64,000 bases of DNA from Phallusia mammillata (taxonomy: Eukaryota): contig OZ281494.1 of NCBI GenBank assembly GCA_965637545.1, positions 16,554,001 through 16,618,000 of the forward strand. The letters run 5' to 3'. The translations under genes were made by a program, and so were the position numbers. The notes under the pieces are model-generated. The model saw only the letters and a list, made by a program, of their open reading frames with translations, was not told where the DNA came from and did not search any database. This document shows positions 9,827 to 64,000 of the stretch, piece by piece (positions within the stretch are counted from its first letter, which is position 1; every line of letters begins with the position of its first letter).

Positions 9827-10594
9827 CTACTGAGAAATACATATGATTGAAATATCATTGCTGCGATATACTTCATGCATTTCACAAATAGGAATATAGG
9901 TTATGACCAAATTATGCACATTTTTAAGCAAATTTAAAAACATTTCCAGCAACTCCTTTTTGTTTCCAGTCTCCCTGTGTTCAAAGGAACACAAAATTTC
10001 AACTTCTGATAAAGACTTGAACAAGTGCACAATTGTGTCAACCAATAATTTAACACCATCCTCATAATAAACACAATCGGCTATGAGAATACAGACTGGT
10101 GTAGGTGCAAATTGAGCCAAATAATTAACTGTTTTTGCCATGTCTTTTTGATTGCCCCATTCCAGTGTCATAGCTCCCACTGATCCCTTTTCAAAAGAAA
10201 ATATTTTGGCGTCCAATATTTCTTTGTACTTTTGAGAAATGTGATTGACGGCACTGTCTACTGCAGTTAGATTGCACTTAATGTTTTGCCTAATGTTTTC
10301 AACTAAAAGAGGTATATATTTTTGCAAATCTGTCAACAAAACCATTTCCGCCCCAACAGTCTTTGCAGCTAACCCAACAGCCCCTGTTCCAGCACCAAGT
10401 TCAATCACATGTTTTCCCATTACATGCTTTCTTCCTTTTGTGGTAATCAAGTATTTGAGAAGAACGATCCCTGCATCCCATAAAACACAACCACATTCTC
10501 CTTCTTCCAGTTGTAGAATGGACAACGTTGTGTTTTTCCCAGACGGCCCGAGTTCAATTTCAACCTCTCTTATAAACGTATTATCAATTTCCAT
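9827..10594 (-). CDS. VCPKMT: VCP lysine methyltransferase (METTL21D), intronless
   Basis: 255-aa ORF with GCVLWDAGIVLLKYL, SAM-binding VIELGAGTGAVG, ILIADCVYYE and C-terminal HEVYRSNDISII, all characteristic of VCPKMT/METTL21D. Acceptor cccttgcAG lies 2 nt before the ATG. Confidence 0.92.
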   Translation of the reverse strand: MEIDNTFIREVEIELGPSGKNTTLSILQLEEGECGCVLWDAGIVLLKYLITTKGRKHVMGKHVIELGAGTGAVGLAAKTVGAEMVLLTDLQKYIPLLVENIRQNIKCNLTAVDSAVNHISQKYKEILDAKIFSFEKGSVGAMTLEWGNQKDMAKTVNYLAQFAPTPVCILIADCVYYEDGVKLLVDTIVHLFKSLSEVEILCSFEHRETGNKKELLEMFLNLLKNVHNLVITYIPICEMHEVYRSNDISIICISQ

Positions 10595-10598
10595 TGCT

Positions 10599-11210
10599 GC
10601 AAGGGTTCATAAATTAAAGCAAGGCGTTTATATAACGAATCGGCTGTTCAGGGTTTTCTGCTACAAGTTCAAGCTAATTCATTAGTATCTCTGTCATTCT
10701 GAAATTACACTGTACAATTCCGGCAATCTGAAACCTGAGGTCATCGTATATTGTGTCCTCTGTTGACAGCGTTATTTTACGTACAGGGTTTCAAAATTAC
10801 TTTGAAATTCCGCAAAGTGAAATCATTATTATTCGTCCTTTTAATTGTAACCAACCATGGAGTTGATGAGCATTAGTCAAATGTTTACATGAAAATGATT
10901 TTTTTGTTACATGTGTTAGTCGCGCAGGTATTTTTTGCCTAAAGTATACATATGATTTTAGACGTGGTTCTGTTGCAATTTCTAGACCTCATCGGAACAA
11001 AATAGATTCGTCACGCTCAGCTTCACACACTCATACAACTTTACATTTCAAGTAGAAAGTGAAAAAATGCCACTTTTTTTACCGTATGTTATGTAAATTG
11101 TCAACCGCTTGTTCGGCATCTTCTTCTGTGTTATCTAATTTTTTTTTAAATAATTGGCGTACTGTTAACCAAACTTTTAGCATTAATTTTTAGAGTTGTT
11201 TTTTTTTTAG
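10599..11210. promoter_or_regulatory. Bidirectional promoter region (VCPKMT/PDHX vs DHX8)
   Basis: Head-to-head ATGs at 10594 (-) and 11231 (+), about 640 bp apart, each preceded by a pyrimidine tract and AG (10598-10597 and 11209-11210). Confidence 0.55.
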
Positions 11211-11230
11211 CCACGAATTTGTGAAAAAAC

Positions 11231-14200
11231 ATGGATGAATTAAAGCAACTAGAATATCTGTCACTTGTGTCTAAAGTATGTACTGAACTGGACAACCATC
11301 TGGGTTTAAACGACAAGGACTTAGCAGAATTTATAATTCGGTTGGCTGAAAAATATCCTAATATTAAAAAGTTCTCCAAAGCCCTAAAGAAAAAGGGAGC
11401 AGATTTTTCTGATTCTCTGATGGAAAACTTACTGTCTTTGATTAAACGAATGAGACCATCTGATAAAAATAATGAAGTGGAAGAAGCTCCAAGTATGGTT
11501 ACCGAAGATGGAAAGAAAAACTACAAAGCTATGTTTCCAGCATTGTGTCAGCCTGATGATGTTGAAAATGCTAAGGCAGAAATTGAAGAATTGGAAAAAT
11601 CTCTGATGGCAATAAAACAAGATTCGAAAGAAGTGGAAGAAAGAAAAGCAACATCACCTCCTCGATCTTCTCGAGATCATTCAGATAGAAGAGACAAACA
11701 TTCAACGAACAAGCGACGATCAGATCGGAGACATGATGATGAAGAGAAAAGAGATCGCCACAGATCTAGAAGAAGATCACGTGATGGTTCATATGACAGC
11801 AAGCGAAGCCGTGGAGATCATGAATCAAGGAGGTCGTATGATTCTCATGATAATAGAAGAAATCGTGATAGTCGTGACTCTAGGAGGTATGATGAAGAAA
11901 GAAATGGACAACAGCACACACAGCGGGAAATCACCCCTGGTGATATATATGATGGAAAAGTATCTTCTATAATGCAGTTTGGTTGCTTCGTGCAGTTGCA
12001 GGGCATGCATAAGCGTTGCGAAGGACTGGTCCACATATCTGAGCTCAGAAGTGAAGGTCGTGTTTCAAGTGTGGCTGATGTTGTTTCCCGTGGACAAATG
12101 TGCAAAGTGAAAGTTCTAAGCCACACGGGTACAAAGACAAGTCTGTCAATGAAAGACGTAGACCAACGGACTGGGGAAGATCTGAACCCAAACAGAACCC
12201 GGCGCATGCAAAACATTGAGACTAGCAAAGATGAAGTTGCTTGCCGAAATCCTGATCGGCCTAGTGACCTGGTGCTGGGTGGGACTTCTGATAGTAGCTC
12301 GATGTCAAATCAGAAACGCATTAATAAAGTGTCTGATATGGAGTTATGGGAGATCAAACAAATGGTATCAGCTGGTTGCATGGATCCTACAGAGCTTCCA
12401 GAGTTTGATGAAGAAACTGGGGTACTGCCCAAAGCGGAAAGTGATACAGAAGACCTCGAGATTGATTTGTTGGAGGAGGAACCACCTTTTCTGCGGGGAC
12501 ACACAAAACAAAGTATTGATCTCAGTCCAGTTAGAATTGTTAAAAACCCTGATGGATCCTTGTCCAAAGCTGCTATGATGCAAAATGCCTTGTCAAAGGA
12601 AAGGCGAGAGATTAAACAGCAGCAGCGTGAGGCTGAACTGGAGTCAGCTTCCACTTCTCAAACAAAAAGTTGGAGTGATCCGATGCCCAAAACAGCAACA
12701 CCTGCAAATTTTGCTGGGGCAAAAGGTGGACTTTTGTCAGGGGATATTCCAGAGTGGAAAAAACAGGCATTTGGTGGCCAAAAAGCTTCATATGGAAAGA
12801 AAACTGAGCTCTCAATAATTGAACAAAGACAAAGTTTGCCAATCTACAAACTAAAAGATCAGCTTGTGCAAGCTGTAGAAGATAATCAGGTACTAATAGT
12901 TATTGGAGAAACTGGATCTGGAAAGACAACACAGATTACACAGTACATTGCTGAGGCTGGTTACACCATTCGAGGTAAAATTGGATGTACCCAACCAAGA
13001 AGAGTAGCTGCAATGTCTGTTGCTAAGCGCGTGTCTGAAGAATTTGGTTGTCGTCTTGGTCAGGAAGTTGGTTACACTATTCGATTTGAGGATTGCACCA
13101 GTCAAGAAACTAAAATCAAGTACATGACAGACGGTATGATGCTTCGGGAGTGTCTTATTGACTTCGACCTGTCTCAATACTCAGTAATTATGTTGGATGA
13201 AGCCCATGAAAGGACAATTCACACAGATGTGTTGTTTGGCTTGCTGAAAAAGTGTGTTCAAAAGCGCAAGGACCTAAAGTTGATTGTTACCTCTGCAACT
13301 TTAGATGCTGTGAAATTCTCTGAGTACTTTTTTGGTGCTCCTATTTTTACCATTCCGGGCCGAACATTTCCAGTGGAGATTATGTACACAAAAGATCCAG
13401 AGCCTGACTATTTGGATGCCTCACTGATCACTGTGATGCAAATTCATCTTACAGAACCCCCTGGTGATGTTCTTCTCTTTCTTACTGGTCAGGAGGAAAT
13501 TGACACTGCCTGTGAAATTCTATTTGAAAGGATGAAGTCACTTGGAGGAGATGTACCAGAACTTATTATTTTACCAGTGTATTCAGCATTGCCATCTGAA
13601 ATGCAGACTCGCATTTTTGACCCTGCTCCGCCAGGAAGTCGCAAAGTTGTTATTGCTACCAACATTGCGGAAACGTCATTAACAATTGACGGCATTCATT
13701 ATGTTGTAGACCCTGGATTTGTCAAACAAAATGTTTACAACAGCAAAACTGGCATTGATCAGCTGGTTGTAACTCCTATATCACAGGCCCAGGCTAAACA
13801 AAGGGCTGGAAGAGGAGGCAGGACTGGTCCTGGAAAATGTTACAGGCTGTATACTGAAAGAGCCTACAGGGATGAGATGTTGGCAACTGCTGTTCCGGAA
13901 CTGCAGCGAACGAATCTTGCATCCACAGTTCTTTCTCTAAAGGCCATGGGTATCAATGATCTGCTTTCATTTGACTTCATGGACCCTCCCCCAATGGAAA
14001 CTCTAGTAACAGCCATGGAACAACTTTACCAATTAAGTGCACTTGATGATGAAGGTCTATTAACTAGACTTGGAAGAAGAATGGCAGAGTTTCCACTTGA
14101 TCCAATGCTGTGCAAAATGCTGATCATGTCAGTACATTTGTCATGCAGTGAGGAAATCTTGACTGTAGTGTCCATGCTTTCTGTACAAAATGTGTTTTAC

Positions 14201-14806
14201 AGGCCAAAAGAAAAGCAAACCTTGGCTGATCAGAAAAAGGCCAAATTTCACCAAAACGAGGGTGACCATTTGACATTACTATCTGTGTACAATTCCTGGA
14301 AAAACAACAAGTTTAGCAACCCTTGGTGCTTTGAGAACTTCATCCAGGCAAGGACACTTCGTCGAGCTCAAGACGTTAGAAAACAGATGTTGGGAATTAT
14401 GGATCGCCACAAACTAGATGTAGTTACCTGTGGAAAGAAGATCACCATGATACAGAAGGCTATTTTGAGTGGATTTTTTCGAAATGCTGCCAAGAAGGAT
14501 CCTCAGGAAGGATACAGAACATTGGTTGACCAACAAGTGGTGTACATTCATCCAAGCAGTGCTTTGTTTAACAGGCAACCAGAATGGGTTGTTTATCATG
14601 AACTTGTGCTCACTACCAAGGAGTACATGAGGGAGGTAACAGCTATTGATCCCAAATGGCTGGTTGAGTTTGCACCCAAGTTTTTCAAGATGGGTGACCC
14701 GACCAAGCTGAGTAAGCAAAAGAAACAAATGCGCTTGGAGCCGTTGTACAACCGATACGAAGAACCGAACTCCTGGCGTATTTCCAGGGCGTATCGTAGG
14801 AGATAG
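11231..14806 (+). CDS. DHX8: Pre-mRNA splicing DEAH-box helicase DHX8/Prp22, intronless
   Basis: 1191-aa ORF with N-terminal [19 protein letters not shown], an RS/RD-rich region, S1 domain, [27 protein letters not shown] and C-terminal [10 protein letters not shown]. Confidence 0.98.
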
Positions 14807-49712: not shown

Positions 49713-51818
49713 CTAAAGATCTTTGTTGTACGGTGCGTTGAGGTCAAAGTAGACTGGTTGTTGTTGAGGAATCGGCTGTTCGTAACTATTTTCACTTGAA
49801 GTGGTTGTAATACTTTCTACATCCGGATCACGTCCGCTTGAACCATTGTCATTTTGAACAATATTGTCCAGAATCTGTGCTGAGCTTTTTGGTGCAGATA
49901 CCGTAGACATAGGTTTCAAACCATCTGTAATACTCTGAGGCAGTGATGCCTTAATTTGATCGTAGAAATGTGTCACGTGCTTTCCATCGCCATCCTGATT
50001 GGTTGAGATATCAATATCAATGTATGGCGGTAATGGAATTGAATCGTCAATGGTGTTGGTTTCGCTTTCGAGTCGTGTGTGAGATCCGGTAAACTCATTG
50101 CCGTACCTGGGACAACTTTTTGTTACATAACGTACTAATTGAAATTGGTAGCTTTAATATAGCATTTGAGGTTTGCATAATCTTTAAAAGCGGTGTATTT
50201 ACAAAAGCAGCGTAATTTACTACGAAATTGGTCAAACAAGCTAGCATTGTTCTGTTAAAACTTTGCTTGCCTTTTCCATATTTTTATGAATAGTCCTAAT
50301 GCGAACATAGGTAGTAGAACAGCAATCACGATCAGAACCGTTCGTAACGACTTTGCACCTAAAAAAATATTTTGTTGGAAAAGGCACTTGAGGTTATTTT
50401 ACCAACTCACCTGAACCTGGTATGTATTTATTTTTCAGTGTGTAAATGAGATTGGTTTTTGATAGATCGTGATCGGCAGCGTAATAGAATGAGTTGTTCC
50501 ATCCGCCAGTCACCGCTATACGGACAAATCCTAGCAGTTGGTTCGTTTGGGCTTGTGGCCTGTAAAAAATGTTTTCGTGACCTGATTCGAATTTAAAAAA
50601 ATCCAATATTTGTTTTGGTACAACTTGCCATTTAAATGCTCTTACTTAACGCTTAAAAATTAGGTAGGCAGAAAAAAAATGCCGATTTGTTTGTGAGACT
50701 CCGTACCTTAAGTATCCCATGACAAGGCCGGGTTTGGCCTCAATCAGATGCCGTTTGTTGATGCAGCGATACAAATATTTATTTGGAGCTCTCCACAAAG
50801 TCGACAGGTCGCCCAATGCCCCAAATCCTGTCGGGCATTTCATTCTCCAGACTTGCAGAAAAGTATGCGAGTAAAATATTCGAGTTATTTGTGTCGGTGT
50901 TGCTACGTCATCACCTTCGATGCTGAAAAAAATTCACTTTGACTGTTTGTTTTTGAACTCAGCAGAATATTTGTCTGCCCTACACTTAAAATGTCGGACC
51001 AGTGCGGCGATTTCCAAACTTTTTAATCGGTTGCTCATACCACGCACTGAAAACCTAAAAATATCGATAACCATGTGGCCAAGAGCGATTTTTACAAATA
51101 TGAATACATAGAAGCAAGTAGTACGACTATCTTTATATAGTAGTACCAGCTCCAGTAGCCTTTTGCTCCACCGTTGTAAGCCAAGGACTAGATTGCAGTG
51201 TAAAAAATAATGTACTGGACACCGTACTACGAATGCGATTTTTTTCTGTAGCACTTCTTTTTATCAAACAAACACCTCAGACCCCATCAAAAACTTATTG
51301 TCTGCAAATTCTTCTGGCCTTTTTCAACATAAGCTTGTCTTGAACTGTATTTTTTTAGACTTACCCTGTTACAACTGGCATGAGTAGTTTTGGGTAAGGT
51401 TTATTTTCCTCTAAATGTTGTCCGACGATATAATAGCCTGATGTTCGAACAGGTTCCCAGATTGTAAAATGTTCATTTATGGTTCGTGTTATATTTGACG
51501 CTGGCCTCATCAGCACGCGGAGTTCGCATCGTGATAACGTAAGACCTGCATTAGTTAGGGAATTTATTTTAAGTTTCCGCTTGATTAAGAGGAATCTTCA
51601 AAAGTTTGACTTTTCGTGTGAAGTATAATAAACAAAAACACACCAGCAAGCAGCAACAACATCTGGAATCGACTTTGACTTAAATGTACTACAGTAAAAA
51701 CTTTTTTCTTAAGACTTATAGTGTAAAAATTTGCTTGCCTTATCACACAGCTTGGAAAACATATTTTATGTCATGACTTACCTGCAAAATAACACATGAA
51801 AGTCAACCACGTATGCAT
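49713..51818 (-). CDS. Receptor A: type-I membrane protein with Vps62/DUF946-like ectodomain and Tyr-motif tail (~354 aa)
   Basis: Exons 51818-51782, 51545-51365, 50922-50707, 50559-50411, 50358-50271, 50106-49713 (1065 nt, open frame). Signal MHTWLTFMCYFAGLTLSRC; FTIWEPVRTSGYYIVGQHL; VWRMKCPTGFGALGDL..YRCI; TM TVLIVIAVLLPMFALGLFI; tail with PPYIDI, HFYDQI, PVYFDL. Confidence 0.8.
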
Positions 51819-52644
51819 TTTGCTATATGCTTTACCTGTCTAACATAGACTAAAGCGCATTTGCAACAAACGTGTACATCCCTACCGCCTCACTTGCAGT
51901 CAAATACTTTTCCGCTGTGGCATATACGGAAGTTGTCGTTAGGAGCCATAATGTACATTGGATTGGTGTTTCTTCTGTTGACAATGTAAGACTGATATGA
52001 CAGTTTGTTACATTCAGGTTTATTGTCAGTACAATCATAACAACACACCTAATAACACTTGTTTGTCTTGTAAGCATCACTTTATCGTACGTTGAAAAAA
52101 GATAATAATTGGGTTTAAATACATATGCTCTTAAGTTACATAGTATTTTGTCTCCCAGAGTAAGGGATAAGATCATCTATTGTTTTGGTCTTAACACTAA
52201 AACACCTCTCTGTGACGTAGAATTACGAAGTAATACGTTCATCATACGCTCAAGACTCCGTGTACAACCTACGCATGTATAGGTCATGTGCATGTTTAGA
52301 ACTGTCACGGCCCTTGGTGTTTCAAAGGTTCAACTCAATGACACAGACATGATTTATTTATTGCGTTATACGGTATTTTTTTCCAGCTGTTAGTCAATAC
52401 CAAAAACACTTTTTATATGGATTGAACCCATTCCGATTTGGTCGGGCCGAAAAGGGTTAGAAAAATACAATGTAAAGAACCATTGGGATTGATACAAAAA
52501 TTGCTCTTGCCGTTGCTTTTAAGGAACAAGCAGAAGTAACTGCGTTTCGGTTTCAAAGTCGCTCGACGTCTTACTCTCATTAGAAAAATCGCTCTGCTCA
52601 TTTCACGACTTTTTGCGGGGACTCAAACATCCTTCCAAAATGTT

Positions 52645-55321
52645 TCATACTTGATTCGGCGTAGCGTAGACATTCATATTCTGATAATTAAGCGGGCTCT
52701 CAAGAGCTTCGGGCACGTGATGTGTCGGCAATTCAGCTGCGAAAGCGTAATCGCATTCTCCATTGTCCATGCCATGATACAAAATGTTCGGTTTCATTGC
52801 TCGGTTATCTCGTTGAGGTTCGTATAAGATATTGTCTCGCAGTTCCGCTTCCGGGTTCCCATACAAGTGAGGGCTTCCCACGTCCCGGACCACTTCGTAT
52901 TCGCTCTCATTGTTAAGGGTTACTGTGGTTGTGTTCGTGTTATTTACACTGGCAGGTGCGACCTTCATGACGTGTTTCTTGTGCCTGTGTAAAGTTCGTT
53001 GAAATTAGTTCCTTAGAAACTTGGTTAGACGTATTTTAAACACAATTTAATTGCATCAACGGAAAATGATTTTGTGCCTGAAAATGTTTTTTAAAACTTG
53101 TACACTAAAATGTCTAATTATTTGTTTGTTATTGACAAATAGGGACTGCATTTCACATTACCATTTATTTGGTTTCACCCTTGTTCTTATTTGGTTTAAA
53201 ACCTTTATTTTGAGTTATATGCTAAAGCGACATAAAGATGATGGTATACGATTTACCGTTTGCCAATATAAAAGAAGATGTATTAAAAAACATAACAATT
53301 TGCATAGAAACAACCCACTTACCATATGCAACAAGCAAGTACCATTAACGACAAAAGACTGACGCAAACCAAAACACCAATTGCCACCTTTAAACCAGGA
53401 CCAGTATCTAAAACAAAACATTTTAAGTTGAAGTCAGGTTAAAAAATACGTTGACAAACGTTTTCGTGACGTCACAACGTAACCAGTGACGACTGTCCAC
53501 CTTGTGACGTAGTACGGGTCAGTGTGGTTGTCGTTGATCGATTAGGTGTTGTCGAAGTTGATATTGGATGTAATGCTCTTGGCGAATCCGTTTGGAGAAT
53601 AACTGCATCTACGTATACAATTGAGTGTATTTAAACAGTTTGTAAGTTTGATCACAAAGTGATGTAAAAATTGATATATTTTTCAAAAACCCAACTGCGT
53701 TGACCACAACAGTTTAGCTTCAATTATCACATTAATTTGATATGTAAAAAAAACGTTTATCGCAGTTAACAGTTGTATGTAGACCACTGGTTTACCTTTC
53801 TTAAGAGCGTAAACTCGTTTCTTGGAATGGTATGCGAAGTTGAAAAACGGATTTTTCCATCCATCTACTGCAATAGCACTTCCATAGATCGCATAACCAG
53901 GATTTCCTTCACTAAATGCAGTTTTTCTTCTTTACACGAAAATCAATTCTAATTACCAAACCTTGCTAAAAACTTACCTCAACGAATCTTGTAGCCTTGC
54001 TGGGACTGTGGCCTCCCGTATAACACATCGGTACTTTGACATGTCTGGTTTTCTTCTTGGTCCATCAGTTTGTAATCTTGAGGCAATTGATCCAAGGCTA
54101 ACGTATCCCTTTGGACATTTCATCAACCAAAAAGCAACCGTATCTAACATCACCCATGGTCCGTAAAAGTCCAGTGGTTCAGCCAAGCTTTTGTTCACAG
54201 ACCTAAAGGTGTGAAAATTTAAAGTATTTTGCTTGGTGATTTTTTAGGCCAATAAACGTGCTTAACATGCCCTTTCCGTTTTTTTATTGTGCTATATAAG
54301 TAGGTTTTAAAACTCTAACAATTCGGCACCTCCTTTCTTAAAATCGTATAGACATAATACATATAAGTTTGAAGTAATACCTTCCAACGAACAATTCAGT
54401 GTTGGGAGGAGGATTGCTTTGGCTATTGTGAGCAAACTGTCCAAGCACGTAGCTATCGTTGACAGGTGGTACAGGCTCCCATACTGATGCACTGTTTTCT
54501 CCAATGACTGAAAGATATGTTTTCACAACTATGATCTCCACCTTTGGGTTGCTAGCCAACGTGAACGCTGGAAAATTAAGCGAAGTAGTAAATTTTCTAT
54601 AAATGTCAAATAGCATTGTGACAAAGGAAGCAACGTGTTGAGATTAAAACTATGTAGATTATTTTTGTGAAAATATTACCTCCATGCACGTTTTGCTGTC
54701 TGAAACGTTCGTATTTTTCTTTGTTTATTTTTCTTTATTGGCTCATAAGCTTTTTGTAACTTAAAGCTTCTTTAAGCACTTTGGTATGCCCATTATGTTG
54801 AGACGAGGGTTTTTTAGCCAACAGTTTTTCCCGAAATTGTCATTAAGACGAAGCGAGTTAAGGAAAAACCCATTTACGCGTAATCCAAATATCATCTGGA
54901 TTGCGGAAAGCCGACTTCCCCTTAACTGCGTGTCCAGTCTGCATGTTGTTTAAGCAGTGATGTTTCTCGAAGCAGAAATTTCATGACATTTGTTGAACGC
55001 AAATGAGAGTTTTATTGTTAAATGACACGAATGTGTTTAGCACCTGTATTTCGGTCCAAACTTTAATGTTTTAGCAGTTCTATGCGAGAAGTTCCTTAAA
55101 TTTTAGTTTTGACAGTTTCGAAAACATCAGCCGAATAATTGTAAACCTTTTTTCAAGTTTGAAATCTTGATTATATTTTAAAAGGGCGTAAGTCAATTTG
55201 TCGTACATGTTTAGCGTACTGACTGATTACATCACTTAAATATAGAAACATTTTTCCACCATTTGTATTCGTACTCACCAAGAAATGCAAGTAGATAAAC
55301 TGACGATATATCTAATCTCAT
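52645..55321 (-). CDS. Receptor B: paralogue of A, Vps62-like ectodomain, Thr-rich stalk, TM, Tyr-motif tail (~367 aa)
   Basis: Exons 55321-55279, 54567-54381, 54202-53978, 53911-53796, 53608-53501, 53407-53323, 52984-52645 (1104 nt, open frame). Signal MRLDISSVYLLAFLAFTLA; SVWEPVPPVNDSYVLGQFA; FWLMKCPKGYVSLGSIA..KYRCV; TM VAIGVLVCVSLLSLMVLACCIW; tail with SEYEVV, NYQNM, NVYATP. Confidence 0.85.
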
Positions 55322-57239: not shown

Positions 57240-59849
57240 TCAAGTCTCGACGCTCTGTTTCCGCACCTCTTGATATTTATCATCTACTTTATTAAAACGC
57301 TCAAGAGCTCCGTTTTCTTTACTGATGGTGCCGATGATTTCGCCATAAGGGGATATTCCTGATGCCGCTCCGCTTGTTGACACAGTGTTGTTATTTGGCT
57401 CGTGCAAGGTAAAAGTGGGACTACCTGTTGTGCTAGCTGTAGCTTCGGGTTCATCCGGCGCAGGGACGATCAAGCTGTACTCTACTGAATCGTTTTCAAT
57501 CGCTTTTAGTGCCACGATCTCGCTGTATTGGCTCACCGCTTGTGCATTGGAGCCATTTTCGATTTTCTGTATGGCCACTATTTCGCTGTATTCGCTAACT
57601 GTGGCTTTTTCTGGAAGCTTCGGCGGAGGTGGAGAATTGGATCCTCCAGCTTTGTCGCTGTTTTCTGTAGGGTTAGGAACATCAGACGCAACATCATACA
57701 GGAAAAAGTTTCCACGCCCGAAAGATGTTGACGGTGCTCCTTCTGCATCAGGTGTTTTATCCCCAGTTATCTCACAGTACGCCTTGTCTCCGGTAACTGG
57801 TATTGGTTCCAAGTAGTCGTTCTCCTTTAGCCTGACTCCGGGGCGTTTTTGGTTTCCGTCAAGGTCAATCACGTCGTACGGTCGTTCAGGCATTGGTATG
57901 TTACTGTAATCTGCTCGCTGATTGGCTGAACGCAAACTCACGTGAACAGCGTATGGGTTAATGTCATCACTTGGTTTTGGGCGTTTTCTGTAAAACAATA
58001 TTCCTGTGATGAGAGACAGGTCAATTTTAAAATTCATTTGTGTGAGTATTTAAAAAAAAAATGATAAACTTAATGTTTGACCCGAACATATGTAGTGTGA
58101 CATACTGGAAACGGAACAAATTAATCTTCCATCAAGACCCTGGATTGCTGCCCAGTTTGGAGTTAAACAAATTTCGTTTAATGTCCAAGTACTTATCTTT
58201 GACAGAACTGACCTTTGCCGACGTCGATGCATGAAATTAATTACCGTTCCCACGATGATTGCGAGCAGTGCAAGTGACAAGAGCATTATCCATAGCCAAG
58301 AGCCGCTTAACAGCGATGTACCTCCAGCTGCAGAGGACGTAGTTTGTGATGAGATCGTAGTTGCAGTCGCTGCGTTGCGCGTCGCTGAAAGCAAGATCGA
58401 AGTCGCCGTTTGCGCTGTGGATTGCATGCCAAGGGTCGCTGTTTGCGCCGCAGTGGTATTCGCAAGGATAGCAAAAGATGACGCGGGCTGCGCTGTCGTC
58501 ATATGTTGCGCGGGAGCGCCGCTAGTGGTAAGCACAGTGCTGCTTTGCGCGTCGCCTGCAGTCGGGCATAAAGTGGTTGTTGCGATAAAAAATCCTACCG
58601 AGGTCTATAACTTACCTGGATCGCTGGTTGCCGTGTTTGAAACCAGAACAGACACTGGCACCAGACTTGCTGTAAGGTTTACGTTAAAGCCGACAGCCAC
58701 AATGACAACCTGGATTGTTGGTGGCCACGAGGTGGCGCGCTCCCACGGTACGTGACATAAGTTCACCGATTTGGCATCGAATTTGGAGTAGTTTTCGCTT
58801 TGGTATACATAAGGTGAATGATAGACCTGGCACAGATTTCGTCGAGATGAACAAATGCGGTCATCTGTAAAAATATTTTGGCAAAACTGTTCGATTTGTT
58901 TTGTAAGTTATATGTGGCATCAATTAATAGGTACCTACCGTTAGGCATTGTGACATATTCCTGTGATACATCGTAGCACCCTTGACGATTTTGCGGCGAA
59001 TAAATATCCCCTCTCACCATCATGACATAGGTTGTATTGGCTCCTTCTGTTGGAATTGCCCAAGAACAGTTGATTCTCGTGTTGACGTGCAAGTTATACT
59101 CGTTCTTCCGTATTTGTGTTGTTTCGCACTTTGTTCCTGGCATTGAGGCTGCATAAAAATCTAAATTGTATTCATTTTTTCTTTTTTTCAATTTTTTGAA
59201 AAACTTTCATAAACGTGAATCAATAAGCACAGGTTCGATATAGTCTTCATCTAATACCAAGCAACGAGCTGGGATATTGTAGTTTTAAGTTAAAAGTTTA
59301 GAGTATTGCATCTTGTTTAGTATTGCGTATAGTCTATTTCTATGGCCATTTGGAAATACTAGAACGTACATGCGTGGCATTAATAAAGTCCGTGTCATTA
59401 TTTTGTCAGAACAGCATTATTAATATGTAGGAAGCGCACTGGTCGGAAGGGCGCGTGTTTTGAGTGGACAGAGACAATTTGCATCCGGTCGTGTCAGATA
59501 CAAAATTCAAGCGAATATATATTTATACATGGACTTTATGAGTGTTATTTTTATTACAAAACATTTTTAAATTCTTTCAACAGAGTCGGTAAAAATACCA
59601 TACGATTTCCAATTGGATCAGAATGTTTTACGTATCTAACCTTCCAGTGTTTTTTTTTTGTACAAGTAACGGAAATGTTGGTACCAAAGTTGATAGTTTT
59701 TGTGAATTTTTTATCTCTATTTGTTAAGGTTACTTTCCTTTGTATTGCGACACACCATCATTAATATTCGCCCACGTTTTCTTACCTCGTGATGAAACCA
59801 CACACAGTGCAAGTAGTGACGTCACGATTCCGGCAGGTATTTGCATCAT
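57240..59849 (-). CDS. Receptor C: divergent CUB-like domain, Ser/Thr/Ala stalk, TM, multi-ITIM tail (~537 aa)
   Basis: Exons 59849-59786, 59148-58939, 58864-58616, 58555-58213, 57987-57240 (1614 nt, open frame). Signal MMQIPAGIVTSLLALCVVSSRA; Cys-spaced KCETT..INCSWAIP..GCYD..RICSSRRNLC; TM WLWIMLLSLALLAIIVGTVINFM-HRRRQRKRPK; 11 Tyr in the tail. Confidence 0.85.
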
Positions 59850-61655: not shown

Positions 61656-62764
61656 CTAAAGGTTATTAGGGTTGTTATACAGCTCGTTGACGACGGTCTG
61701 TTTTTCGCTATCGCCAATTTCAATTGCTTGGTAGACATTGGAGTTGGGTTTTTTCGTGGACATTGCACCATCCTTAATAGTTTCGTATGTCGGGTCACCG
61801 TCCGTTCCAACCCGATGACGTGCGATTATGCCAGCTTTTGCCCGGTCCAATTTCTTTTGTTTTTTGCTGTTCATAAAAGAGCCTTTAGGGTTCGGCTTGA
61901 AAAAAGACTATAACATTAAAACCTTGAAGTTGACACCAAAATGTAAATGCCAAGGCGTTTCGAGTTTATCACTTTATGCATGTATATTTAAAATCTAAAA
62001 CCTTGTCTATTTCGACCAGACTTACCTGTATAAAAGAAACAGTATCACTCCAGCTCCTGCAATCAGAAGAGCTGCTGCTACAATAAGACCAATGTGTAGA
62101 TCACTAAGTGCTGGGCTTCGACCTTTTATTTCTTCGTCCTTGTTGGTTTCAGAAATTCCTATTTCAGGTCTTGTTGATGGTGAAACTTTCGTACTAGTTG
62201 CGGTTTCGATTGTCCCTGTAAGAATATTTACATAGTATTGTCGTGCGTTTTCAGCGACCAAAGTATGTTTTAACTATACCATATAGAAAAGCTTGAATTG
62301 TGAGTTTTGTGGATTGATTTACTTTAAATCTTATATTGTTCCAGTTTGGCTCATCAAACACCTCGCAAGCTGCTTCATTTTCTTTTTCTTCTGGGTAGAG
62401 CACCACGCATCCAGCTAATGCTGGAATCTCGTTTGGGAGTGGAACTATTGTTCCACTTGTTATGGTAATTACAATCTTACTGTATTGATCGCCTTTTAAC
62501 TTCACGCACTGACTTTCGGGGAAGTCGTATGAAGTGGGAACAGTTTCTAACATCAGTAGTTGGCAGTTGCGGTTCATACCAACTGCAATACAAATGTTTT
62601 AATACGAGATTACCATACACATGTGGATTTTATCATGCAAACAAATGCCTATAGTTGGTTGACTTTTACGACAAAACGATACGTTTAGAGTTCTAATGCT
62701 CACCAGTTGTGGAGATGCATTCCAACAAAATTCCTAAAGCTGTCAAGATGGCAATAAGCAACAT
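61656..62764 (-). CDS. Receptor D: small type-I membrane protein with a 4-Cys ectodomain and short YxxI-bearing tail (~254 aa)
   Basis: Exons 62764-62704, 62582-62280, 62215-62026, 61866-61656 (765 nt, open frame). Signal MLLIAILTALGILLECIST; ~100-aa ectodomain exon (phase 1-1); TM IGLIVAAALLIAGAGVILFLLY-SKKQKK; tail YETI-x14-YQAI...LYNNP. Confidence 0.82.
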
Positions 62765-63366: not shown

Positions 63367-64000
63367 TTAGGAGTCTACTACTACAGTACGAATCAATGCG
63401 TTGTCATACTGGTTAAAATGGATGATTGTAGTTGAGTACCTGTCGCTATGTTTAGCACTTTGATATGAAGTTGTATAAGATGGCTTGGTTGCTAATGTCT
63501 CGCTTTTATCATCAATCCGCTCCAATGTGGTTGTCGAGCCTTGTTCGGACAGCAATAACTCGTCGCTCGTGGTTGCCAATTGTTTGCCAGATGATTTTGA
63601 TTGGTAGTTGTGTCTGACCAGACCGTTCCTAATGTTGATAGGATTACAAAGGTTTCCGGGTGTTTGCTGTTTAAAACTGTAGTGTTGGTAGTTAGATTTC
63701 GATTTCCATCTTTTGGGCTATTGTCCCTCTTGGTATCGTTTGTGGGAGTATTTTGGTAATTTGTGGCCACTACCGCTCCGTGTAAACTTGTGGTTGATAG
63801 ATTGTCGTTTGTTTTATTGTTGGTATTTGTTGCTTGGCTTACGATTGTGGTTACCGGTATTTGGTTTGGGGTAATCGCTGTTAAAGTGTTAGATGCGCCA
63901 ACTTCGGTAGCTAATATCAGGGAGACTATTGTTGTAGCCATTACAAAATATTGGTTGTGGTCGGGTTTTGGGTAAAGTGTCCTGCTTAGAGTAGTCAATA
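63367..64000 (-). pseudogene. Mucin-like Thr/Ser-rich ORF with an apparent frameshift (pseudogene, allele or assembly error); 5' end outside the window
   Basis: ORF 63998-63492 is T/S/N-rich up to ...SDTTTN (~63600). T/S-rich sequence continues in another frame (SKSSGKQLATTSDELL...STTT...) to a stop at 63367. Confidence 0.45.

Follow-up and report, generated by a model that had tools for sequence, protein, structure and literature searches.

We found that two adjacent minus-strand genes of the ascidian Phallusia mammillata, A (49713-51818) and B (52645-55321), encode predicted type-I membrane proteins whose extracellular part is a divergent beta-tripod, a domain otherwise known from pore-forming toxins and Vps62 proteins. 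Positions are those of the whole 64,000-nucleotide stretch that was analyzed (the window), and the focus of this report is the segment 49713-55321. The gene structures, the expression and splicing of B, the homology and fold of the ectodomain, and the orthology of B with Ciona intestinalis LOC100176218 are directly supported by the results below. Beyond these, we consider it probable that A and B belong, as tandem paralogues, to a family of ascidian type-I membrane glycoproteins in which a single divergent beta-tripod head serves recognition and a tyrosine-bearing tail provides the readout. An initial annotation, made from the sequence alone, had described two receptor-like paralogues here, and both are present with the motifs that it quoted.

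The two genes lie in an AT-rich, intron-bearing genome. B has seven exons and encodes 367 amino acids, and A has six exons and encodes 354 amino acids. The products have a common layout, with a hydrophobic N-terminus, a cysteine-poor domain of ~175 amino acids, a single hydrophobic helix, basic residues, and a Tyr-rich cytoplasmic tail of 110-130 residues that holds seven tyrosines in B and six in A. Intron phases are 1,2,2,1,1,2 in B and 1,2,2,1,2 in A, which has no stalk exon, and the phases after exons 1-4 are 1,2,2,1 in both genes. Since the intron phases match, the tandem duplication proposed in the initial annotation is the simplest reading; the ectodomains of A and B are 26% identical over 165 aligned amino acids (E value 1e-9). 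A third copy of the ectodomain was not found within the 64-kb window.

The structure of B was confirmed by RNA. Twelve runs of the source species contain 20-29% of the words of the stretch, and contigs were mapped for four runs from three studies. In each of these four runs, one contig of 1.5-1.7 kb joins all seven exons of B, and all six introns are confirmed by spliced contigs, whose CT..AC borders correspond to GT-AG on the minus strand. Exon 1 (55279..55321) holds the start codon and the signal peptide (MRLDISSVYLLAFL...) and is joined to exon 2 at 54567/55279 in the four runs; the 5′ untranslated region extends to at least 55391 (~55391 by the RNA contigs). The next three exons, all supported by RNA, carry one beta-tripod repeat each: exon 2 (54381..54567, end phase 2) contains VWEPVPPVNDSYVLGQ, exon 3 (53978..54202, end phase 2) runs from WLMKCPKGYVSLG to KYRCV, and exon 4 (53796..53911, end phase 1) runs from IAVDGWKNPFF to VYALKK. 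The contigs place the exon 4 acceptor at 53911 (joint 53911/53978) and not at the upstream AG at 53929, which leaves the frame unchanged and gives B its length of 367 amino acids. Exon 5 (53501..53608) encodes a Ser/Thr-rich stalk (43% Ser plus Thr) with one N-x-S sequon, which is probably O-glycosylated. Exon 6 (53323..53407) encodes the transmembrane helix (VAIGVLVCVSLLSLMVLACCIW), and exon 7 (52645..52984) encodes the cytoplasmic tail with its seven tyrosines and the stop codon, while the 3′ untranslated region ends at ~52125. In addition, two short contigs of 216 and 153 nucleotides (depth ~3.5, runs X1 and X2) fall at 54788-55008 inside intron 1 (711 nucleotides) of B; they could come from retained intron sequence, from an alternative exon or from a small transcript unrelated to B.

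The same order is found in A, also on the minus strand. Exon 1 (51782..51818) contains the start codon together with a signal peptide (MHTWLTFMCYFAG) that is weaker than in B, and the three beta-tripod repeats follow in exon 2 (51365..51545; IWEPVRTSGYYIVGQ), exon 3 (50707..50922; WRMKCPTGFGALG to YRCI) and exon 4 (50411..50559; IAVTGGWNNSFY to IYTLKN). Exon 5 (50271..50358) encodes the transmembrane helix and, in the absence of a separate stalk exon, directly follows repeat 3. Exon 6 (49713..50106) encodes a 130-amino-acid cytoplasmic tail with six tyrosines and the stop codon, in a frame of 146 open codons. The reading frame is uninterrupted throughout the six exons, and four of the five introns have canonical GT-AG borders. 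The donor of intron 5 is either a GC at 50270 or a weak GT nine nucleotides downstream (exon end 50262), both in frame, and read-through of exon 5 would give a short KIWKRQAKF tail. The tyrosine sites of the A tail are YGNE, LPPYIDI, YDQI, YEQP, YFDL and NAPY, and the tail is unrelated to that of B.

The ectodomain of A and B is a real but divergent beta-tripod, corresponding to the N-terminal part of Pfam Vps62 (PF06101). That part of the Pfam model has been equated with the beta-tripod (PMC7613979, PMC10683392), which was originally observed in GNIP1Aa, a MACPF protein with insecticidal activity (PMC7613979, PMC8624791, PMC10683392). When the exons were compared with Pfam one by one, only B exon 3 matched Vps62 (E value 0.0028), with 16.5 bits, below the cut-off of 22.1; the homologue of Ciona savignyi reached 23.5 bits and the orthologue of C. 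intestinalis 19.2 bits. A language-model search ranked three Vps62 clusters first (0.88). A profile of exon 3 of A and B, searched against 1.84 billion representatives, gave 84 matches, and 17 of the 20 matches that were run through Pfam exceeded the Vps62 cut-off, always at profile positions ~25-210; the tunicate ectodomain itself aligns to PF06101 positions ~38-205. A profile was then built from 37 non-tunicate beta-tripods, which had themselves been retrieved with the exon-3 profile of A and B. It matched spliced B with 74 bits (E value 1.6e-20 at Z = 20,000; profile positions 16-128) and spliced A with 68 bits (E value 1e-18; positions 16-178, all three repeats). As a negative control, the best of 1000 shuffled and four reversed sequences scored 5.9 bits. 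These results bear out the homology to Vps62/DUF946 that the initial annotation had proposed from the motifs.

A family profile of the same 37 domains and the two Ciona ectodomains matched residues 331-494 of GNIP1Aa (6FBM) with an E value of 1.4e-31, and a two-exon profile found only a weak match to 6FBM in the PDB (E value 0.33). Word searches with the Ciona protein and the family alignment returned only the two Ciona proteins plus one weak Logan match. The nearest relatives are mixed and comprise unlabelled metagenome or transcriptome contigs, metagenome-assembled genomes of Bacteroidota and Anaerolineales, and squamates.

The fold was modelled on the ectodomain of the Ciona orthologue and not on the sequence of B, using AlphaFold2 with a 39-row alignment, and the model has a predicted local distance difference test score of 79 and a predicted template modelling score of 0.81. 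In the comparison with AlphaFold and Foldseek that the initial annotation had suggested, this Ciona model matched 6fbm_A first (E value 2.8e-6, template modelling score 0.77) and pleurotolysin B next (E value 4e-4). Exhaustive alignment with VIA-align against 48,161 chains gave 6fbm_A (314-517) at Z 18.7, with 173 of 177 residues aligned at a root-mean-square deviation of 3.2 Å, and, over 151 residues, pleurotolysin B at Z 11.9; nothing else exceeded Z 3. In the ESM Atlas, the five best matches were all Vps62 clusters (template modelling scores 0.77-0.81), one of which is mainly chordate and fused to aerolysin/ETX-MTX2. The initial annotation had also named the MABP beta-prism as a candidate fold. 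No beta-prism occurs in the Foldseek list and none exceeds Z 3 among the 48,161 chains, so this suggestion was rejected in favor of the GNIP1Aa-type beta-tripod.

The family alignment contains three sequence repeats. In A, B and the Ciona gene alike, the exons meet at profile positions ~57 and ~126, where one repeat passes into the next, and thus each leg of the tripod is encoded by one exon (exons 2, 3 and 4). In B, exon 2 covers positions 16-~57 and exon 3 positions 57-126 (51.8 bits) of the beta-tripod profile, and exon 4 covers positions 123-168 of the family profile; exon 3 of A scored 41.5 bits against the non-tunicate profile. A MAFFT alignment of exon fragments placed exon 2 on repeat 2, which reveals the internal repeat, and wrongly placed the tails on the ectodomain; such alignments are unfit as profiles. 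The repeat signature of the beta-tripod is given as DxG[ST]Gx3D in PMC8624791, citing Zaitseva 2019. The loop that carries this signature is lost in every repeat of the tunicate proteins, which makes A and B divergent members of the family. At least one strict motif is present in 27 of the 80 other matches, and squamate members also have none. The ectodomain has only two cysteines (C106 and C136 in B), which are conserved among the tunicate proteins and which the initial annotation had taken to suggest a disulfide. The second, in YRC, is present in 36 of the 37 non-tunicate beta-tripods, regardless of the first (20 of 37), and the pair is therefore not special to A and B.

Signal peptides and transmembrane helices were judged by hydropathy. 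In B, the N-terminal stretch reaches 2.42 and the helix at residues 236-254 reaches 2.84 and is followed by HKKH. In A, the N-terminal stretch is weak (1.48), and the helix at residues 201-219 reaches 2.82 and is followed by KR. Both proteins therefore have what is expected of a type-I single-pass protein: an N-terminal hydrophobic stretch and a single transmembrane helix that is flanked by basic residues on its cytoplasmic side. The predicted order of signal peptide, domain, transmembrane helix and Tyr-rich tail holds for B by spliced RNA and is conserved in Ciona, where LOC100176218 (P0002) has the same topology as B. The B tail contains NILYEP (Y309) and PNILYHGM (Y324), both kept in Ciona, and further sites at SEYEVV, YGNP, YQNM and VYATP. 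SH2-type motifs are matched by YHGM and YQNM (YxxM), by YQNM also as YxN, and by SEYEVV, which resembles an immunoreceptor tyrosine-based inhibitory motif (ITIM; pattern tested, [SIVL]xYxx[IVL]).

B is the orthologue of C. intestinalis LOC100176218, a protein of 387 amino acids. The two align end to end with 32% identity (E value 2e-42), both genes have seven exons with phases 1,2,2,1,1,2, and the tails have N[IV]LYEP, PN[IV][IL]Y and N[IV]YA in common. In both species the locus also holds a giant spectrin-repeat gene in tail-to-tail orientation. Eleven exon open reading frames of the Phallusia giant gene (41.9-49.3 kb) match the gene for 8927 amino acids that is convergent with LOC100176218 in C. 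intestinalis, which shows that the neighborhood is conserved. The C. savignyi protein H2YLM4 (P0004, partial) is a B orthologue with a B-like layout, and its entry already carries PF06101. The Ciona proteins thus share with B the domain order, exons, phases, tail motifs and synteny, whereas identity is only 32%, Ciona shows a single gene at the locus, and the database status is 'uncharacterized'. No A-like copy was found within 10 kb of the Ciona gene. Two fragments from two other sources, P0001 (52% identical to B) and P0007, point to more relatives.

We compared A and B with the systems in which this domain is known. The closest in structure is GNIP1Aa, the MACPF insecticidal protein of Chromobacterium piscinae (PDB 6FBM ~314-517), which has the fold of the Ciona model, three tandem repeats and the W..P.GY..LG core. 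It differs in being a soluble bacterial toxin with the tripod after a MACPF domain and the DxG[ST]Gx3D signature present, and identity is ~16%; in A and B, a lone tripod without the signature forms the extracellular part of a eukaryotic type-I membrane protein and is followed, after a stalk in B, by a transmembrane helix and a Tyr-rich tail. In GNIP1Aa, target recognition is assigned to the beta-tripod (PMC8624791 and PMC10683392, both citing Zaitseva 2019). The only other structural match is the C-terminal domain of pleurotolysin B, a MACPF protein of Pleurotus (PDB 4OEJ, 9DO6; Pfam PlyB_C), which is a membrane-proximal docking module of a pore former. Unlike the tunicate domain, it is fused to MACPF, and solved structures of OlyA/PlyB pores show it working at the membrane together with OlyA, its aegerolysin partner; no sequence-level match between it and A or B was obtained here.

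Pfam Vps62 (PF06101, IPR009291, formerly DUF946) covers plant and fungal proteins and modules of plant VPS13M1/M2, with ~6000 InterPro entries mainly from Viridiplantae and fungi (PMC10683392). The tunicate ectodomain corresponds to the tripod part only, the remaining ~330 positions (~210-541) are absent, and the tunicate scores straddle the Pfam cut-off. In plant VPS13M, the tripods are cytosolic and inserted into a protein of lipid transfer, in contrast to the ectodomains of A and B. Animals also have extracellular tripods: a chordate cluster of Vps62 with aerolysin/ETX-MTX2, a Vipera latastei protein (KAM3841139.1, P0053) with a tripod and two CBM14 chitin-binding domains, and a secreted squamate protein of Heteronotia binoei (XP_060088965.1, P0074). 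These contain the same domain but are soluble, pore-forming or chitin-binding fusions without a transmembrane helix or tail, and the squamate and other chordate members are all annotated as uncharacterised. Since secreted chordate tripods exist, a recent acquisition from bacteria is not required to explain the ascidian domain. Partner domains among the relatives are MACPF, aerolysin/ETX-MTX2, Toxin_10, class-3 lipase, PI-PLC-X and CBM14, and in every characterised or annotated context examined the beta-tripod is an accessory module on a membrane- or surface-acting protein. In layout, B resembles receptors with ITIMs or immunoreceptor tyrosine-based switch motifs and CD28 with its YMNM site, in which a small ectodomain, a stalk and a transmembrane helix precede a short tail with SH2-type motifs. 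This is an analogy only, as A and B have no immunoglobulin, lectin or leucine-rich-repeat ectodomain and no sequence relationship to these receptors.

From the accessory place of the tripod on membrane-acting proteins and its role in target recognition by GNIP1Aa, we read A and B as putative surface glycoproteins that capture a ligand. By analogy with the characterised relatives, the domain would keep its role as a target-recognition module; in those relatives it docks pore-forming toxins and membrane-active enzymes onto a component of the target membrane or a membrane-seated partner protein. The B head would be held off the cell surface by the probably O-glycosylated stalk and would capture an extracellular ligand. 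Engagement or clustering would then be read out through the conserved tail tyrosines in N[IV]LYEP and PN[IV][IL]Y, together with the YxxM and YxN sites in B. Phosphorylation of these tyrosines would allow PTB or SH2 adaptors to bind, leading to signalling, internalisation or both. A would be a divergent duplicate of older date, in which the same head comes without a stalk and is joined to an unrelated tail; if A is expressed at all, it would couple the same kind of recognition to another output. Surface location, ligand binding and phosphorylation of A and B are inferences, as are the lipid or glycan sensing and the phosphotyrosine signalling that the initial annotation had put forward.

Several results weigh against this interpretation. 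The ectodomains of A, B and the two Ciona proteins (P0002 and P0004) contain neither a strict nor a relaxed match to the DxG[ST]Gx3D signature, and with the signature lost the binding mode of the toxin domain may not carry over. The structural evidence comes from a model of the Ciona orthologue built on an alignment dominated by canonical members. The sole ITIM-like site, SEYEVV in B, reads TEYSYA in Ciona and is therefore not conserved, and the spacing of an immunoreceptor tyrosine-based activation motif (YxxL/I-x6-12-YxxL/I) was not found in the tails of A, B or P0002. In yeast, the behavior of Vps62 is that of a protein residing early in the secretory pathway (PMC4298680), and a cell-surface location of A and B is thus not guaranteed. 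Finally, gene A has a weak signal peptide and a non-canonical donor. It is covered by no RNA contig in the four runs that contain B, where contigs show presence and not absence, and a search of indexed runs with A alone matched only two DNA runs and no putative RNA run.

Gene A is intact on paper, as a predicted gene. It is possible, though we doubt it, that A is a decaying or silent duplicate and that the locus has one functional beta-tripod membrane protein. The missing RNA, the weak signal peptide, the GC or poor GT donor, the tail unlike that of B and the lack of a counterpart within 10 kb of the Ciona gene all favor such decay. Against it, six exons remain open and in frame, four of the five introns are GT-AG with phases as in B, the ectodomain still scores 68 bits over all three repeats, and the last exon stays open for 146 codons in a genome of 38% GC. 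In addition, expression of A may be restricted to a tissue or stage.

NxxY motifs also serve purely as endocytic or sorting signals, a further point against a signalling role. In a second alternative, which we regard as unlikely, A and B would not signal but would be receptors for endocytosis or for cargo, or simply membrane glycoproteins that undergo sorting; NxxY would act unphosphorylated as a sorting signal for PTB-type clathrin adaptors, like the NPxY of LDL-receptor-type proteins, and the tripod would bind something or merely decorate the surface. Both tail motifs kept between B and Ciona are indeed NxxY (N[IV]LYEP and PN[IV][IL]Y), while the SH2-type sites of B (YxxM, YxN and the ITIM-like SEYEVV) are not conserved in Ciona. 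A Pfam search of the tails and the stalk gave no match, and signalling domains, such as kinase, death or TIR domains, are missing from the tail. However, the seven tyrosines in the B tail and six in the A tail exceed what sorting needs. It is quite improbable that A and B reside in the secretory or endolysosomal pathway with a lumenal tripod acting on lumenal membranes or cargo, a reading by analogy with fungal Vps62: yeast Vps62 is a candidate endoplasmic-reticulum-resident cargo of the Erv41-Erv46 retrieval receptor (PMC4298680), and an exoplasmic domain with Tyr-based tail motifs would equally suit lysosomal targeting, but the mucin-like Ser/Thr stalk of B and of its orthologue in Ciona is typical of proteins at the cell surface, the C-termini (...ATPNQV in B and ...YAVAT in Ciona) have no KDEL/KKxx-type retrieval signal, and the part of Pfam Vps62 beyond the tripod (~210-541) is absent.

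Other genes were observed around A and B. The giant many-exon gene on the plus strand (27400-49313) ends ~400 bp from the 3′ end of A and is convergent with it; it was read by eye as a spectrin-repeat gene with a calponin-homology-like start, and its last open reading frame has no Pfam match. Upstream of B, minus-strand regions at 57243-58604, 61659-62598 and 63370-63998 encode Ser/Thr-rich stretches, transmembrane-like segments and Tyr-rich tails, and Pfam searches of their open reading frames gave no match. In Ciona, a gene for 482 amino acids (locus L001, 5634-8637, plus strand), without a Pfam record, lies directly upstream of LOC100176218 in a position corresponding to these orphan membrane-protein genes; no sequence match between it and the window genes upstream of B was found. 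Farther away, a 259-codon open frame on the minus strand (9830-10606) matches Pfam Methyltransf_16, a lysine methyltransferase family (E value 5e-29), and an uninterrupted 1193-codon open frame on the plus strand (11225-14803) is unusual in this intron-rich window.

The beta-tripod domain is already known, and A and B present it in a variant, membrane-anchored architecture. Of the 84 relatives that were retrieved, the combination of signal peptide, tripod, transmembrane helix and tail was found only in the ascidian protein. The initial annotation knew of no described example; a literature search (Ciona accessions, ascidian tripod, Vps62 receptor) likewise found no paper on a membrane-anchored beta-tripod receptor or on the Ciona orthologues, but these orthologues are in the databases and the C. 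savignyi entry carries PF06101. The only function assigned to a beta-tripod in the literature found is that of an aiming device of the bacterial pore-forming toxin GNIP1Aa, and plant, fungal and animal copies number thousands. An expressed, ascidian-conserved, membrane-anchored tripod with a readable tail offers a tractable route to the ligands of the domain; Ciona permits knock-outs, and the ectodomain is small and has two cysteines only. Such a protein would also add a new type of ectodomain to the chordate surface-receptor repertoire.

In a more speculative extension, to which we give little credence at present, ascidians would have adapted the module that guides pore-forming toxins to their targets as the sensing head of a cell-surface receptor family (A, B and LOC100176218) that recognises a microbial or altered-self membrane component and signals through conserved NxxY and YxxM tyrosines to PTB or SH2 adaptors. 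If true, invertebrate chordates would have a class of pattern-recognition receptor that is so far undescribed. If the ligands are microbial or lipid, the family would provide an evolutionary link between toxin targeting modules and host receptors.

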